64,000 bases of DNA, taken from positions 32,054,001 to 32,118,000 of the forward strand of contig OZ286470.1 of the NCBI GenBank assembly GCA_965644265.1, in the 5' to 3' direction. The position numbers and the translations under genes are program-made. Positions 1 to 27,391 of this stretch are shown here, piece after piece. The notes beneath the pieces were generated by a model. That model worked only from the letters and a program-made list of their open reading frames with translations. It made no database searches and was not told the origin of the DNA. Positions within the stretch are counted from its first letter, which is position 1; each line of letters begins with the position of its first letter. The DNA comes from Glycera tridactyla (lineage: Eukaryota).

Positions 1-71
1 GATATACAGCGAGACGAGTGAAACTTCATGAATTGTAGAGGGAATGGTGACGAGAAAAATATCTATGAATC

Positions 72-101: not shown

Positions 102-1287
102 CAATCGAATGATCAATCGAATGTAATCCAGTACTCGGATAATTCGTCCTTAACCAGTATCTTTTTCAGAATTCATCAGTATTTCATTCAAAATTCACTC
201 TCTTTCCTGAAGGTCATAGCTGTTATCACATGGATGGGCCATTTTCAGTGAAGTATCAGGTGTTGAGTATTGCGTTTGTTACTTCACAGCTGGGTCAGAA
301 CTACTTTTTGACAAGTTCTCCACTAATACATGTGATAAAAGCAAGACTATATGGCCGTGAGTTAAAAACACAATACCAAACTCGGTGTGAATTTCTCCAG
401 ATGTCACGAGGCCTTCGGTTGAAATTCACACCTTGTTTGGTATTGCGTTTTTACTTCACGGCCAAATAGTCTTGCAACAATCTTTCTGTTCACTACCAAG
501 TTACTTAATATTCCATATTACCCATCATTTCATCATCATTGCTCATCACTGTCGTGACCAGTGATCACTGCTTTGAATATGTATGATATGCAGATCTGTG
601 TGATTGATTGTTTAGTGCCTTTCATTTTATACAATTAAAGTATCTCACCTTCATCTACGCACAAGTCTGAGAAATTGCCCCTTCTCGTCTAGTATTTCAT
701 GTTACTCTGACATATGTCAGTGCTTGTATATGCACAACTTGTCATATTATCTGTACCAACAAGAATGGTTTTCCACCCATCAAGATCTCATAACCTATAT
801 AGGTATCGGAAAGGGATCTGTGCTGCACCCCGTACTTATTTCACTAGATTCTGATCCTGGATTTCGACTCCGAAAGTTCATCCAAACCAATCAATTCTGT
901 CAATACCAAGCAAACAGAGCATGCGACAGTGAGATGTAAACAAGAGATGGCCATGTGCCAGTGTGCTCAAATACTGTGAGATCCACTCAATAGTTGTTAT
1001 GTGTACACAGCTGAAGCAAACTTTCCCAGCGGTGCTGTAGAGCCATTTATCAAGCTCCATCGCTCTAGATCCAACCCGTAGTGTTTCTCCTAGTTCTGAT
1101 ATCGTGGGACCATCACAATTGGCCAACATTAGGAAAAGATTGTGCTCATGTGATCTCGACTATTCAAGCCCATTCACATTGGGAGTCATTTGTCAGATTG
1201 ATTGATCTCAATCAATTGCTGTCTTACCACAGAGCTTCAACGCTGGTGGAATATGGACACCTATCTTACATGTTTTACCAAGCCAAA

Positions 1288-19600: not shown

Positions 19601-19971
19601 ATTGGGATGCTACAACAGTCATACAAAATGGCAAGTGTGCCTAGGACACGCAAGTCATTCTCCTATCATATATGATTTGATTTTGATTTTAACACATTAT
19701 TTTTATTCGTCAAAAGCATTTACATACACATGGTATACAGTGCATACATCTCCAGGTTGACGAACATAAATTCACATATAATTAACTACGATAATGAAAA
19801 TGGTGATAATGAAAATGAGCGATATGATGAATGATTTGATGAAGGACCCGTTGCAAGAATAAGTTCCAATGTCGAGTATATGTACCTGCCTGCATAATAA
19901 TCTTGTTACTGGAAGCATATACCTCGGCATTTTGAGTAGAGATTTGTTACCTTTCTAATTCAATTCTAATT

Positions 19972-22900: not shown

Positions 22901-23097
22901 AGATCCTTTGGTGTTGTAATGTTTTTGATCGTTTCGGGGGTCCAACGTGGTATGTAACGGGGTAGGGTTTCATGTTGATGTGGTAAAAAAGGTTTGAACC
23001 CGGTCGGGACATTGACAGTATCAGCATAAACATTTGGGTCCGAGTTGATGTTAGGATGAGATGATAGAGATATATTTACTAACTTGGTTAGTCTTGT
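19972..23097 (-). CDS. LINE ORF2p, apurinic endonuclease plus reverse transcriptase (open stop-to-stop frame; the ORF track starts it at TTG 22869)
   Basis: APE motifs LNVRSI, GET, YRPP, GDDN, IDH, SDH. RT motifs GFRKGRST, FLDLKKAFDTVDH, GVPQGSILGPLLF, YADDT, KYLGIVLD. No stops or frameshifts. Confidence 0.95.
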   Translation of the reverse strand, partial: TRLTKLVNISLSSHPNINSDPNVYADTVNVPTGFKPFLPHQHETLPRYIPRWTPETIKNITTPKDLCRLNGVSIGYLNVRSIVRKISDIKIFLHQSRLNILLLGETFLNKSILDHELFIPGYKMIRFDRDGGSGLRGGGGLMAYYRDDRHVEWQSNWSICNSDIECLWMKLVLPQTRPTFICCLYRPPSGSALNALEIIDNKILDITQLGMSDILLIGDDNLDISKPGQSKKLVENFCMSNQLKQLIHGHTRVTTSSRTNIDHIYTNNIENYRMAGILDLGISDHSFVFTTRKKKRQSKKNHYIQLRNYKLADYNEISKRINEYNWSGVMQDKKCINACTADALDIICTIVDENIPLKTYKVKEGVPDWVDGEYLDAIRAREESSRIFKLNPTEVNNARKKECLNRTKLMKITLQKNYINNKLNDANSDMKKLWKTIREFWHSDKKHININKINESTDETEIPEILNEHFASIGSKLSSNIPTSNYNPVDCFPFSYRDTFTLTEITDTDIKNVINGIDPSKSGRDDGLHSRVLINCQDALCPILKYLFNRSILEGKFPNIWKVATIIPLYKEGDHSIPGNYRPISLLSTTSKLLERLIHQQIYGYIESMDLLCREQSGFRKGRSTSTCLLEFLDNIYVGMEEGLAVGTVFLDLKKAFDTVDHALLLKKLSMFGLSESCTNWIGSYLESRYCETRVGKCISTAKSVSCGVPQGSILGPLLFTIYINDLPYYLKNVTTNIHMDVNINSSNLNNVSPSSQLYADDTAICVKGTCSISIQMQLNDVMKYVTRWMNMNRLSLNLKKTKYMVFSLPQHQHKYTDISINVAEIDIEKTETMKYLGIVLDPILSFKSHVLHIRSKTIGKIGVLGRLRPVITRNTALMLYKTLVLPIFDYGDILYNCLSQRDNYNLQKLQNSALRHIDRKPRRFNIKQLHQNLDVQMLDARRRDHEIIHVKKMLSPNYVAVPLCTLCSQVNYQHAHETRSKSKELVKISRWKYKISEKNFRHRGSKSWNSHIEKYPETAMLNIEPFKKFIKELRHLELEN

Positions 23098-23649
23098 TCA
23101 GAATTACACAATAAACACAAGAAAAAATTAGATTGAATCATAAAGTGAGGAGGATCCTATGAATTAATCTGTTAGTATTCAGGTGTTTGATTGGGAACAG
23201 AAGGGGGGGGGGGGGGGTTTCGCTATAGCCCACAATCTTTCTTCCCGAAAACGCTCCCGTCTCCATGGTCCGATTTCTTGAATTCAACTACACATTTGAT
23301 ACATTAAATACTGGTCGCAATATTACATAATCGAATTCATGACATAAAAAATATTTTGAGCAAGGTAATCCTACATAATATGAATAAATCTTGCACCAGG
23401 TAGCCATTTCTTAGATAATTGGTATCACCAGTTTATATACTCATTCGCACAAATTGCTTTCCAAGTTACCAAGGAATTCTATGTACGTTTCGCATTTTAG
23501 TTGGTGATTCCACTTAAATTTTTTGGTATTGCTGTTGACTTTTCTTTGATTTCCAAGTCACCAAGGAATTCATAGTAGCCAGAGCAGCATACCATATATT
23601 CTATAAGTTATACGTAACAAAATATTTGAAATGGCACCTGCTTTCTCAC

Positions 23650-23751
23650 CTTTGTACTCAACAATATGCCACGCTCTGCATACCACCAACCTCCGCAACT
23701 ACAATTACCAATGCATAGTGGTTGTCGCCTGCAACAAACTGTAAGTGACAT
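23650..23751 (-). CDS. Predicted leader exon of ORF2 (MSLTVCCRRQPLCIGNCSCGGWWYAERGILLSTK)
   Basis: The ATG overlaps the esterase stop (TAATG) and is in frame with ORF2. The leader ends at the phase-0 donor AAG|gtgaga. ORF2 has no in-frame ATG upstream of its first endonuclease motifs. Confidence 0.6.
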
Positions 23752-24689
23752 TATTTCTTTTTCTTGGCAGCTGGTTCATCGTTAGAAGCACTACAGTGTG
23801 TTTTCCAGTGCTCCAAAATAGCATTTGTCAAAGATGTTGTCATTGCTTGATAACCCAGATGATTCAGGTGGTTTACATCATAGGGATCACAGAAGCCTCT
23901 CAAGATATGCCCAAACTTCCTCTTGCGTGAACCATGTTTCGCTCTCTTTTTGAACCCCTGTACAATTCCCTCCTTTTGATACATTGTAACATACAGTAAA
24001 TGAACATGGACGAATCTAACAATGCCTGGACCAGCAACCGGAATGTAAGATCTGATATATGAATCCATGCAAATAGCAACCTGTCGTGTTGCTGGTTTCC
24101 AGTAGTTTCTCCACAAAATAGGTGGAACCATTAAGGTAGCCCCAGGAAAATGGTCAGTAAGAATTTCTACTGCGTTTCTAATTCTTGGATAGATATTTTC
24201 AAGAAATTCTATTTGTGAGCTAGTGACAAGTCGCTTCATGATGCGTGGGTCTTTGTGGTATATAGTGTTTAGAGTAAATTTCTGGAAATTGTCCACATCA
24301 TTTGATCCAAGAACCACTATGATGTAATCAGGTTGGATTTTTCTGATTTTGATTTTTTGTAGGGTGTTACCATATTTCTGAAGTCGATGTGGTGAAGTCT
24401 GTCCTTGGAATTCATTAGCAAAGGTGTACCATCTCCCACCTCCAATTCCAAAAAACTTCCATTTCGTTGCGTGGTTCTGCATAGCTTCACTCGTGAAAAG
24501 CCCTACGTTTTCTCCTATACGTCTTGCGTGGCTAGATCCAACGACTAACACACACGGTTCAGCCACTTTATCCAGTAGATGCCTGTTGCGAAACAGGGGA
24601 CAATACGAGCCCATGGAAGTCAATTCGAGTCGAGCCTTTGCTTCCTTCTCATTTTCTGCCGGATCAGTCTGTAATAGATAGACGTACAT
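23751..24689 (-). CDS. LINE-encoded stand-alone SGNH/GDSL esterase, 312 aa (possibly extended N-terminally by a spliced leader exon)
   Basis: All four SGNH blocks are present: VVGSSH (I), GIGGG (II), LGSND (III), DVNH (V). Confidence 0.85.
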   Translation of the reverse strand: MYVYLLQTDPAENEKEAKARLELTSMGSYCPLFRNRHLLDKVAEPCVLVVGSSHARRIGENVGLFTSEAMQNHATKWKFFGIGGGRWYTFANEFQGQTSPHRLQKYGNTLQKIKIRKIQPDYIIVVLGSNDVDNFQKFTLNTIYHKDPRIMKRLVTSSQIEFLENIYPRIRNAVEILTDHFPGATLMVPPILWRNYWKPATRQVAICMDSYIRSYIPVAGPGIVRFVHVHLLYVTMYQKEGIVQGFKKRAKHGSRKRKFGHILRGFCDPYDVNHLNHLGYQAMTTSLTNAILEHWKTHCSASNDEPAAKKKK

Positions 24690-24890
24690 CTTTACCTAAA
24701 CGAAGGTTTATAATTTGAATTACTGACACAATTTATTTCATGCAGTGTCTAGTATATGGCGGTTCATATGGGGTCATGTACGGGGTCGGTACAATTTTAC
24801 GGGTCATTGCAGGCGTTTGACCTATTTTGATTGCGGTATTCTATGTCAATCACATTAAATCTTCTCAAATAGTATTAAAATAACGCTTAC

Positions 24891-24956
24891 CACGAGTTCG
24901 GGATCAAATTCATCATCGAAAGTGTTTATATCCGCTATATGACTATGGAGCTCCAT
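24891..24956 (-). CDS. Predicted leader exon of the esterase ORF (MELHSHIADINTFDDEFDPELV)
   Basis: The ATG overlaps the ORF1 stop (TGATG) and is in frame with the esterase ORF. The leader ends at the phase-0 donor GTG|gtaagc. In-frame acceptors lie at 24697/24696 and 24670/24669. Confidence 0.65.
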
Positions 24957-27391
24957 CAGTTTCCGCCTATCTTGTTCAAAATATCGAAAGCGTTGGAGAG
25001 AGGTAACGAACCAGTTGTCGACTTCTCATTTGCAGAGTTCACGCGTGCTGACCTAGATGGGGTGATGTAAGCGCCACCCCCGGATTCCGCGTCACTTCTA
25101 GAAACTAATGATTCCTTGCTACTTCCGTCAGAGGCAGCTCGACATGCGTGAGTTTTTTTTTCAGTCGCGGTATTTAGCCATTTCTGAAAGAAATCGCTCA
25201 TCTTCGGGTTGTTATCAACTTTAGTCATATTTTCTTGACTCTGCATATCTGTCGGCTGTGAGTTTTTTGGAGTTTCAGAGGTTTGTCGTGGTTTTCGTTG
25301 CCTTTCGAATCTGGATTTAAAAGGGTTTTTAAAAGGGTTTTTGTACTGAGGGCCAACCATTTCGTTTTGTTTTGGAACATTGTATGTGTTCTCATTTAGT
25401 TCAGGAACCCCCTTGTTCGTGACCGATGTCCTATCTTTTGGCAGACCATTTTCCCTCGGGGCCTGACCCAGATTACATAGGTCTGAAAGTTTTTTTGTAG
25501 AAAAAATTGGGATCTTGTCTTTCATTCTGTCTTTAGCTGCGTAAATTTTCCCATCACGGGTCCAGACATGTTCCAACTTCCCTTCTTTTCTTGCTGCTTT
25601 TGCTTTAAGGAAAATTTCATTTTCTCTTTCCGTTAGATGTTCTCGAAAGAAAATTGGAGAATTTCTGATATTAATTTTACAGACAAATAGATCTCTCCTC
25701 CAGTTTGCATGAATGAACCGTACTTTGATTGGCCGAGGCTTCCCCTCTTTACTTGGAGGACCAAAACGTGAAATCTGCACAATGTCACTCTTTTTTATGC
25801 CCAACTTGGTACGCTCATTAATGAGAGTAATTACCTGATCAATCAGTGTTGTGTCTTTGACAAAGGGCAAACCTTCAATGACAATAGTACTAAGACGATC
25901 ATTTTTTTCAAGGACATCCACCTTACCCTCGCATTTGCCAGTCCTGTCACCAATTGCACCAATCGACTCTTTATTTTCTGTAACACGATGTTCAATTGCT
26001 CCTAAGGTCGTCGCAAGTGCTGTTACTTTCTCTAGCAATTCTCTGGTCGGTGGACTCGTATCCCTGTCTTTAATCTCCTCTCGAATTTCCTCTACGAGTT
26101 TAGACAGTCGTGTATCCGACGATTTCAGTTTCTGATCATGGTTGTCTATGATTCTTGCCATATCATCTAAACACTTCATGATACTATTGTTAGTTTCCGC
26201 ATCAAGTTTTGCTGCAGAGTCAATAGCATCTTCCACGAAATTTTCGACACTCTCTTGCCACCCCTCTTTAAATGACTCCAGTTCATCTGATATTCTCGTA
26301 GTCACAGCATCTTCAATATAGTTCGCACACGTGGTCTTAACGGCAGTGTCTAGTACATCATCCATCGATTTCAATTTATGATCTACTGAGTCTTGGATGC
26401 ACAGGGATTCACATTGAATCATAGGTGGTACATTTTCGTTAACATATATAGCACATGTCTCCCGAGCAATATCACGCATTACTTCTTGGCTTCCATTGAA
26501 GGGAATTATTTCGTCCGTAAGTTGCTCTTTGACGATCTGACTCATCATTGTTTTGAATCCAGATGTCGAGGTGATTGTTTTCATCTCATCCCTGATTAAT
26601 TGTCGTACACTCTCAGTTCCCTCATTTCCAGTTTTTGCTGCTGCACTTGGTCTAATACTTGCGATTTTGTCAAGGTGTTCAAATGATTCGATGTCTGAGT
26701 TACGCAATTTCAGTGACAGATCACTTTCATTTGGTATATGAGTCGATGAGCACGGTGGACTGTGCATGTCTACTAGCAGATCACCAGGTACGTTTCGACA
26801 TGCATCGTCGAACACGAGTACAGTTTCACACACATTGGTATTAACACGAGACACTGTGTCTACTGGTAAAATCCCTCTATCAGCAGCAATAATGTCAGAT
26901 GAGTTATGGTGAAAGGACCCCGAGCTAGAATCTAGCTGTTCCTTTATTTGAGCTTGCTCGTTTTGTAGATTGTTTATGTCTCTCCCTGACTGCGATGATT
27001 TAGCACATACCTCAGATTTCGAGAGACCACCCTCACAATGCGACCCGGCAGAATCGTTTATCAGATCTACAGACGATTCTTCAACACTGATTGAATTCGA
27101 ATCAGATTTATCCACTTGATCTGACTCTTTAACACATGGGGGCTCTTTTGACTCGATTGATTGTATTGGCTTTTTCTGGGGAGATGTAGTAGATGACAGT
27201 ACTTCACCGTGTTTTGTGGTTAGCAGGTCCTCTTGCCTATTCACGACGGCCATTTTGGTACGTTCCGTCAACCGCGTCGACCTAGTATGTCTGCTAGTTA
27301 TATCCTCATTGTAATCTCCCAAAGCATGTAGACTTTCTTCCAACTTTTTCCTGACTCGTTTGGCCTTCTTCTTGGCAGATTTCGATGACAT
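24956..27391 (-). CDS. LINE ORF1p, 811 aa; coiled coil plus L1-type RRM and CTD (transposase_22-like)
   Basis: Heptad-rich segment followed by RLSTIVIEGLP...ISRFG...KPRPIKVRF...IFFREHLT...VWTRDGKIY, a motif series typical of L1-type ORF1 in CR1/L2 elements. Confidence 0.85.
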   Translation of the reverse strand: MSSKSAKKKAKRVRKKLEESLHALGDYNEDITSRHTRSTRLTERTKMAVVNRQEDLLTTKHGEVLSSTTSPQKKPIQSIESKEPPCVKESDQVDKSDSNSISVEESSVDLINDSAGSHCEGGLSKSEVCAKSSQSGRDINNLQNEQAQIKEQLDSSSGSFHHNSSDIIAADRGILPVDTVSRVNTNVCETVLVFDDACRNVPGDLLVDMHSPPCSSTHIPNESDLSLKLRNSDIESFEHLDKIASIRPSAAAKTGNEGTESVRQLIRDEMKTITSTSGFKTMMSQIVKEQLTDEIIPFNGSQEVMRDIARETCAIYVNENVPPMIQCESLCIQDSVDHKLKSMDDVLDTAVKTTCANYIEDAVTTRISDELESFKEGWQESVENFVEDAIDSAAKLDAETNNSIMKCLDDMARIIDNHDQKLKSSDTRLSKLVEEIREEIKDRDTSPPTRELLEKVTALATTLGAIEHRVTENKESIGAIGDRTGKCEGKVDVLEKNDRLSTIVIEGLPFVKDTTLIDQVITLINERTKLGIKKSDIVQISRFGPPSKEGKPRPIKVRFIHANWRRDLFVCKINIRNSPIFFREHLTERENEIFLKAKAARKEGKLEHVWTRDGKIYAAKDRMKDKIPIFSTKKLSDLCNLGQAPRENGLPKDRTSVTNKGVPELNENTYNVPKQNEMVGPQYKNPFKNPFKSRFERQRKPRQTSETPKNSQPTDMQSQENMTKVDNNPKMSDFFQKWLNTATEKKTHACRAASDGSSKESLVSRSDAESGGGAYITPSRSARVNSANEKSTTGSLPLSNAFDILNKIGGN

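Follow-up and report, generated by a model that had tools for sequence, protein, structure and literature searches.

How the second open reading frame (ORF) of a polycistronic long interspersed nuclear element (LINE) RNA is translated is a long-standing question, and a locus of Glycera tridactyla poses it again. The window, by which we mean the whole stretch of 64,000 nucleotides (nt) analysed (contig OZ286470.1, positions 32,054,001 to 32,118,000), carries on its minus strand an apparently intact, multi-cistronic LINE of the APE type, extending from about 27520 to 19673. Its ORF1 is followed by a separate esterase ORF and, after a long spacer, by ORF2, which encodes endonuclease and reverse transcriptase and has no ATG at its 5' end. 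A preliminary description of this DNA proposed that ORF2 is supplied with a start by translational coupling at a TAATG, which overlaps the esterase stop codon, together with splicing of the leader opened there. The reading to which we incline, with somewhat less than even confidence, is another one: the spacer between esterase and ORF2 would not be spliced, and initiation would take place just after a pyrimidine tract, the ATG having been lost in this copy or a non-AUG codon being used.

The ORF2 frame opens at 23097, right after a TGA codon (23100–23098), and its first in-frame ATG (22728) is located downstream of the LNVRS and GET motifs; these points of the preliminary description were confirmed base for base. 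The reverse transcriptase is recognized by Pfam (RVT_1, E 2.6e-35). The APE domain is not reported by Pfam for this protein at E ≤ 0.01; the invariant columns, including E105 and D128, are present in an alignment with PF03372-bearing homologues. There are 71 homologues of the ORF2 protein, the best of them with 41% identity. We compared ten loci of distant relatives (L numbers below; P numbers denote homologous proteins), which share 31–50% identity with the window in the N-terminal alignment. Their architecture is like that of the window element: a homologous ORF1, a separate esterase ORF, and long spacers between esterase and ORF2 (508 nt, 530 nt and 1.7 kb).

An in-frame ORF2 ATG of their own, 23–35 codons ahead of the first APE motif, is present in all seven relatives for which the ORF2 5' end is available. 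In two of them, L002 and L005, the frame is closed by a stop codon 0–2 codons before this ATG. A pyrimidine-rich tract precedes the ATG by at most 45 nt in six of the seven (L001, L002, L003, L005, L006 and L010). The window element has such a tract in front of its open frame, as had been described, and the pyrimidine content of the tract is matched by just 3.3% of element positions. A tract in this place, as in the window and six relatives, recalls the Yn-Xm-AUG arrangement of a picornavirus-like internal ribosome entry site; no Rfam family was detected in the spacer, and the fold of the whole spacer is unremarkable (z-score −1.4), with no significant structure. An overlap of stop codon and ATG was not found in five stop contexts of the relatives. 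The conservation of GT/AG sites, TAATG and leader by which the spliced arrangement was to be judged is not seen in these distant relatives, all seven of which have an ORF2 ATG of their own.

Where and how ORF2 begins we infer from this comparison. Each downstream cistron in this LINE group would be reached by re-initiation near the previous stop codon. The TAATG opens a short ORF behind the esterase, the positional counterpart of a short ORF conserved in relatives, and ORF2 would not be fused to the TAATG leader. Translation of ORF2 would begin just past the pyrimidine tract, near 23097–23070, as in the relatives. As no ATG is present near 23097–23070, either the start has been lost, and little or no ORF2 protein would be made, or a near-cognate codon may be used. 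Near-cognate codons in the 5' end of ORF2 are located at 23085, 23073, 23049, 22953 (ATA) and 22893 (CTG). P0002 is one of the two closest relatives, and its initiator ATG aligns gap-free to the ATA at 22953. The ORF2 extension from 23097 to 22954 leans towards coding in its codon score (about 2100 training codons were used for the codon-usage tests). Long intergenic regions and AUG-independent initiation of ORF2 are documented in other LINEs, according to the relevant passages of PMC3894237 and of PMC11485995, the latter citing Alisch 2006.

The counterpart of the TAATG ORF is found in L003, L005 and L010, where a short ORF 30–45 nt after the esterase stop codon is conserved at the peptide level over about 19 residues. 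Codon differences in its frame are synonymous or non-synonymous in a ratio of 10:8, as compared with 5:16 and 4:15 in the other frames. In L003, a second short ORF begins with an ATG that overlaps the stop codon of this ORF. The 47-codon ORF of the window is the positional analogue of these ORFs. Given these conserved short ORFs, the presence of a start codon where the esterase ends can be understood without splicing. At the DNA level, the best local match to the block conserved in L003 and L005 falls within the TAATG leader (23694–23661) and is not significant (p 0.22).

A splicing event is indicated one ORF further upstream. At the ORF1–esterase junction, the ORF1 stop codon overlaps an ATG (TGATG), which opens a short leader, the putative first exon of the esterase; it is followed by a phase-0 intron and by the exon that contains the esterase domain. 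The donor of intron 1 ranks 7th among 394 GT and its acceptor 16th among 485 AG of the window element (the splice-site matrices are approximate and were used for ranking alone). Acceptors rank 6 of 230 and 3 of 56 in other elements; that of L003 is poorer (101 of 305). In a multiple alignment of four divergent elements (window, L007, L009 and L003), the exon 2 starts share one column. The end of the window leader fits a Pro-x-x-aliphatic motif which precedes the junction in the homologues; beyond this end motif, the leader has no significant similarity to them. In L007, an ORF runs from 11 nt before the ORF1 stop to ATT/GTAAGT, and TTTTCAG/CC is found 521 nt downstream. The tail of its exon 1 matches residues 5–23 of the intronless protein P0095 and the head of its exon 2 residues 25–69 (each p < 0.001). 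In L003, the YAG of the acceptor is itself an in-frame TAG, and no later ATG follows, so that the L003 esterase cannot start unaided. No intron interrupts this position in L001 and L008. The esterase ATG precedes the ORF1 stop codon by 11 nt in L007 and follows it by 1 nt in L009, 12 nt in L001 and about 24 nt in L008; in five elements, the start codon of the esterase thus stays close to this stop, from 11 nt upstream to about 24 nt downstream.

Intron 1 has GT..AG borders, a pyrimidine-rich YAG acceptor, a conserved position and, for L007, a contiguous intronless homologue, as expected of a U2-type intron. Judged from the sequence, this LINE group carries a position-conserved, phase-0 coding intron of apparently spliceosomal type, and its esterase is predicted to be coupled to termination of ORF1. 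In three of the four elements (window 24689–24687, L007 2006, L009 461), an in-frame ATG precedes the acceptor by 9–21 nt (19 nt for the window ATG at 24689). Unspliced RNA may therefore yield a shorter esterase, and a product may be made from spliced and unspliced RNA alike. A reading of intron 1 as a decoy, with the esterase starting at ATG 24689, was initially favoured because such a protein is collinear with P0080 and L001. It was overturned by the acceptor column shared with L007, L009 and L003 and by the split homology of L007. A likeness of the leader to the N-terminus of L001 (p 0.02) is probably spurious, the multiple alignment placing the L001 motif in exon 2.

The conserved intron one ORF upstream raises the prior for a spliced ORF2. 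Of the idea that this LINE combines coupling with splicing, the part that stands concerns the ORF1–esterase junction; a specific need of ORF2 for the TAATG leader and a 567-nt intron is unsupported.

Several observations weigh against an unspliced spacer with initiation behind the tract. A genuine intron of the same design as that proposed for ORF2 is located at the ORF1–esterase junction. The loss of a start codon alone, in an otherwise intact coding sequence of about 6.5 kb, has an a priori probability of about 1%. The chance that the best donor of the element falls inside the TAATG ORF at phase 0 is about 2%, considering the site alone. The 48 codons upstream of 22953 are among the top 9% of stop-free null segments by codon score, and with such coding-like codons in front of it, ATA 22953 may not be the start. 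In L003 and L010, the highest-ranking donor of the locus belongs to the spacer, some 240 nt behind the esterase stop codon. A pyrimidine-rich TAG about 25–33 nt before the ORF2 ATG is kept in L003, L005 and L010. Were the interval between these sites removed in L003 and L010, no interfering ATG would be left on the way from the second short ORF to the start of ORF2.

Among the alternatives, the arrangement of the preliminary description fares best, though we consider it unlikely. It assumes re-initiation at the UAAUG and a 567-nt phase-0 intron (23649–23083), which fuses a 34-codon leader to ORF2, coupling and splicing both being needed. ORF1, esterase and reverse transcriptase/endonuclease would then be made from one transcript, on which the chain of re-initiation is continuous only after removal of two introns and ORF2 borrows the UAAUG leader, a picture that we regard as no less doubtful. 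The elements of this proposal are present: the ATG of the TAATG shares the ORF2 frame and precedes 23097 by 654 nt; the leader ends at AAG/GTGAGA exactly as described; and the AG positions and the 44-nt segment flanked by AG and GT were found again. The ORF2 frame lacks any ATG upstream of 22728, and it opens just 15 nt before the proposed exon start. A branch-point-like CTAAT and the pyrimidine tract precede a stretch of 73 nt free of AG. The same design, with TGATG, leader and phase-0 GT..AG intron, has comparative support at the ORF1–esterase junction, and L003 and L010 may also have a spacer intron.

The donor argues for splicing. It ranks first among the 394 GT on the sense strand of the element, the window contains 0.14 equally good sites per kb, and it is the sole GTRAG between 23760 and 23040; AAG/GTGAGA agrees with the consensus of a U2-type 5' splice site. 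We compared the spacer with dinucleotide shuffles. Some ATG-initiated ORF containing a GTRAG was present in 53% of these. A stop-overlapping ATG with [AC]AG/GTRAG in its ORF was obtained in about 0.06% of shuffles keeping the first T, and in about 2e-4 unconditionally. Depending on how strictly the terms are defined, the frequency of a stop-overlapping ATG whose ORF contains a strong donor is about 2e-4 to 5e-3 in the shuffles. The combination of TAATG and donor is unlikely to arise by chance, though it was selected post hoc. A well-scoring acceptor-like AG (23730–23729, rank 7 of 485), found 20 nt past the TAATG, would enclose, together with the top-ranking donor, a 79-nt exon-like unit (23728–23650).

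Against the fusion stands, above all, the acceptor side. The proposed acceptor, AAG/T at 23084–23083, ranks 373rd of 485. The tract ends 23 nt upstream of it, with another AG in between, and no pyrimidine tract adjoins a YAG as in a U2-type acceptor. The first AG (23094–23093, rank 257 of 485), 10 nt upstream, should win, yet its use leads to a frame that stops after 14 codons. Two phase-consistent routes had been pointed out, and both are present. They are uninformative, however: with three AGs within 16 nt, an exon may start in each of the three phases, any donor finds a partner, and phase consistency is therefore no evidence. The two-intron route needs a 44-nt middle exon with an acceptor of rank 43 of 485, to which the comparison with relatives lends no support. 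In its codon profile the leader resembles non-coding sequence (score −0.20, under every coding window of the element), and no homologue of it was found in Pfam or in the N-termini, spacers and post-esterase short ORFs of the relatives. For 23649–23083, we found neither conservation of splice sites or position in the relatives nor an interrupted conserved coding sequence; the relatives use their own ORF2 ATG, and an overlap of esterase stop and ATG is not among them. Finally, spliced LINE RNAs are retrotransposed (PMC5860796), so that an intron required for ORF2 translation would be expected to eliminate itself, under cis-preference within one cycle. Intron 1 is free of this problem.

Less probable still is a spacer intron without fusion. 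Splicing from the donor at 23649 to the first AG (23094), or to another AG of the cluster, would shorten the spacer, remove its many ATGs and leave a relay of termination and re-initiation leading to ORF2. The model for this is L003 and L010, in which excision of 243 and 254 nt leaves a chain of short ORFs ending near the ORF2 ATG: the last stop codon then precedes this ATG by 9 nt in L003 and follows it by 18 nt in L010. The 25 nt before the TAG are the best-conserved part of the spacer, with 88–92% identity as compared with about 50–60% in the interior, and the window donor, ranking first, would suit this relay as well. In the window, however, the short ORF would stop at 23053–23051, with no nearby ATG in the ORF2 frame to land on. 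The donor position of L003 is not kept in L005, and the exonic parts of the short ORFs in L003 and L010 are conserved no better than the interior of the putative intron.

Very improbable is a frame change, by mutation or homopolymer assembly error, that parts ORF2 from the neighbouring-frame ATGs 23033 and 22973: a 47-codon, ATG-initiated +1 ORF overlaps the ORF2 extension and short homopolymers are located between this ORF and the conserved block, but the ORF2 frame is open for 48 codons upstream and has the better codon score over the shared span (0.004 versus −0.165), being favoured through most of 23082–23020, which disfavours the +1-frame ATGs as ORF2 start.

The coordinates of all features are collected in Table 1.

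Table 1. Features of the window element and their counterparts in related loci. Positions are those of the window unless a locus is named; a slash marks a proposed exon–intron boundary.
Feature	Position	Strand	Remarks
43-nt direct repeat, two copies	27508–27466, 27457–27415	−	5' untranslated region (UTR), immediately before ORF1 ATG
ORF1, 811 aa	24956–27391	−	Stop TGA 24958–24956; homologous to ORF1 of relatives
TGATG	24954–24958	−	ORF1 stop overlapping leader ATG
Leader, 22 codons (putative esterase exon 1)	24891–24956	−	Ends with ..DPELV at phase-0 GTG/GTAAGC
Intron 1, 222 nt	24669–24890	−	Phase 0; GTAAGC...TTACAG, then ACT
Counterparts of leader plus intron 1 (window 24958–24669)	L007 1296–2023; L009 ~72–472; L003 ~1–30		
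Esterase (SGNH/GDSL hydrolase), ORF called from ATG	24689–23751	−	Stop TAA 23753–23751
Esterase exon 2	23751–24668	−	Pfam Lipase_GDSL and homologues
TAATG	23749–23753	−	Esterase stop TAA 23753–23751 sharing its last A with ATG 23751–23749
Short ORF after TAATG, 47 codons and stop	23608–23751	−	34-aa leader portion 23751–23650
Post-esterase short ORF of relatives	L003 903–1058; L010 681–815; L005 ~430–500		
Donor-like site AAG/GTGAGA	23644–23649	−	GT 23649–23648; after 34 codons, phase 0
Esterase–ORF2 spacer, 653 nt	23098–23750	−	37% GC, ATG-rich
26-nt direct repeat	23454–23479, 23546–23571		In spacer; 92% identity, 92 nt apart
Optional middle exon, 44 nt	23327–23370	−	TAG/ before, /GTAATA after; acceptor rank 43 of 485
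C15 homopolymer	23217–23203		In spacer; likely spot for assembly length error
Candidate spacer intron of relatives	L003 1113–1355 (243 nt); L010 880–1133 (254 nt)		
Pyrimidine tract	23107–23130	−	8 nt before ORF2 frame opens; 16 of 20 pyrimidines
Three-AG cluster	23079–23094	−	AAG 23094–23093, AAG 23084–23083, TAG 23080–23079; ranks 257, 373 and 398 of 485
ORF2 open frame, 1041 codons	19972–23097	−	APE endonuclease and reverse transcriptase; stop TAG 19974–19972
3' UTR	19673–19971	−	AATAAA 19707–19702; short (AAAATC)-like tail 19690–19673

ORF1 is homologous to ORF1 of L001 (E 2e-08) and of L007 (E 5e-18); a match to domain 2 of the baculovirus FP protein is weak (E 5e-04, below the cut-off). 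The esterase matches Pfam Lipase_GDSL with an E-value of 8e-05, slightly below the curated cut-off, and has 39 homologues as revealed by HMMER; pairwise comparisons with relatives gave E-values from 5e-11 to 1e-16. It is a cistron of its own after the separate 811-residue ORF1 (27391–23751 for both) and not a domain of an ORF1 protein. Among distant relatives of ORF2, P0023 and P0045 have an APE domain immediately preceded by 2A-like NPGP motifs, and P0012 begins partway through a PHD-type zinc finger, suggestive of another split or truncated N-terminus. A target-site duplication of at least 9 nt was not found flanking the element. Self-BLAST and tblastn revealed no second copy or fragment in the window, and close kin outside it were not detected by exact lookup of the esterase protein, by a word-based esterase search or by a scan of JGI metagenomes.

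This LINE group joins a position-conserved coding intron, start codons at the previous stop and long spacers ending in a pyrimidine tract, and provides a testable case for ORF2 translation. If the ORF2 splice is true, the survival of an intron essential for the reverse transcriptase under cis-preferential retrotransposition needs explaining. If it is false, the element keeps its value as an example of an esterase encoded in a cistron of its own with an intron. In the papers covered by a limited literature search, no APE-type LINE was found to be described as having a conserved coding intron.

Several known systems share traits with the window element. The silkworm R1-clade LINE SART1 uses UAAUG stop-start coupling by termination and re-initiation, as reported in the passage of PMC3894237 that cites Kojima et al. 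2005. Overlapping stop/start pentanucleotides occur twice in the window element (TGATG and TAATG), and both are compatible with this mode of translation. In that account of SART1, however, the AUG opens ORF2 directly, with no intergenic region, whereas the AUG of the window TAATG opens a 47-codon ORF ending at 23608, at a distance of 654 nt from the ORF2 frame. Human and mouse L1 are likewise LINEs with a downstream reverse transcriptase ORF on a polycistronic RNA, and their ORF2 initiation can be AUG-independent, according to the statement in PMC11485995 citing Alisch et al. 2006. L1 has two ORFs separated by a spacer of tens of nt, in contrast to the three ORFs and the 653-nt ATG-rich spacer found here.

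In esterase-containing LINEs of the CR1/L2 type (ZfL2-1 ORF1p, type IV ORF1), the esterase is a domain of ORF1p (PMC3905857, PMC4120745). They resemble the window element in having an SGNH esterase upstream of an ORF2 with APE and reverse transcriptase, and the 3' tail of the window element is microsatellite-like. The difference is that in the window, L001 and L007 the esterase is a separate cistron, interrupted in the window by an intron. Splicing of L1 is deleterious, and SpIREs are spliced, retrotransposed copies which are dead on arrival (PMC5860796). Here, too, GT/AG sites are present within a LINE transcript, functional ones in the case of L1; unlike these, the intron of the window group lies in coding sequence and appears to have kept its position across divergent lineages. 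Penelope-like elements retain spliceosomal introns and are regarded as exceptional among retroelements in this respect (PMC4209133). They combine a GIY-YIG endonuclease with a telomerase-like reverse transcriptase, whereas the window element, with APE and RVT_1, is a classical LINE.

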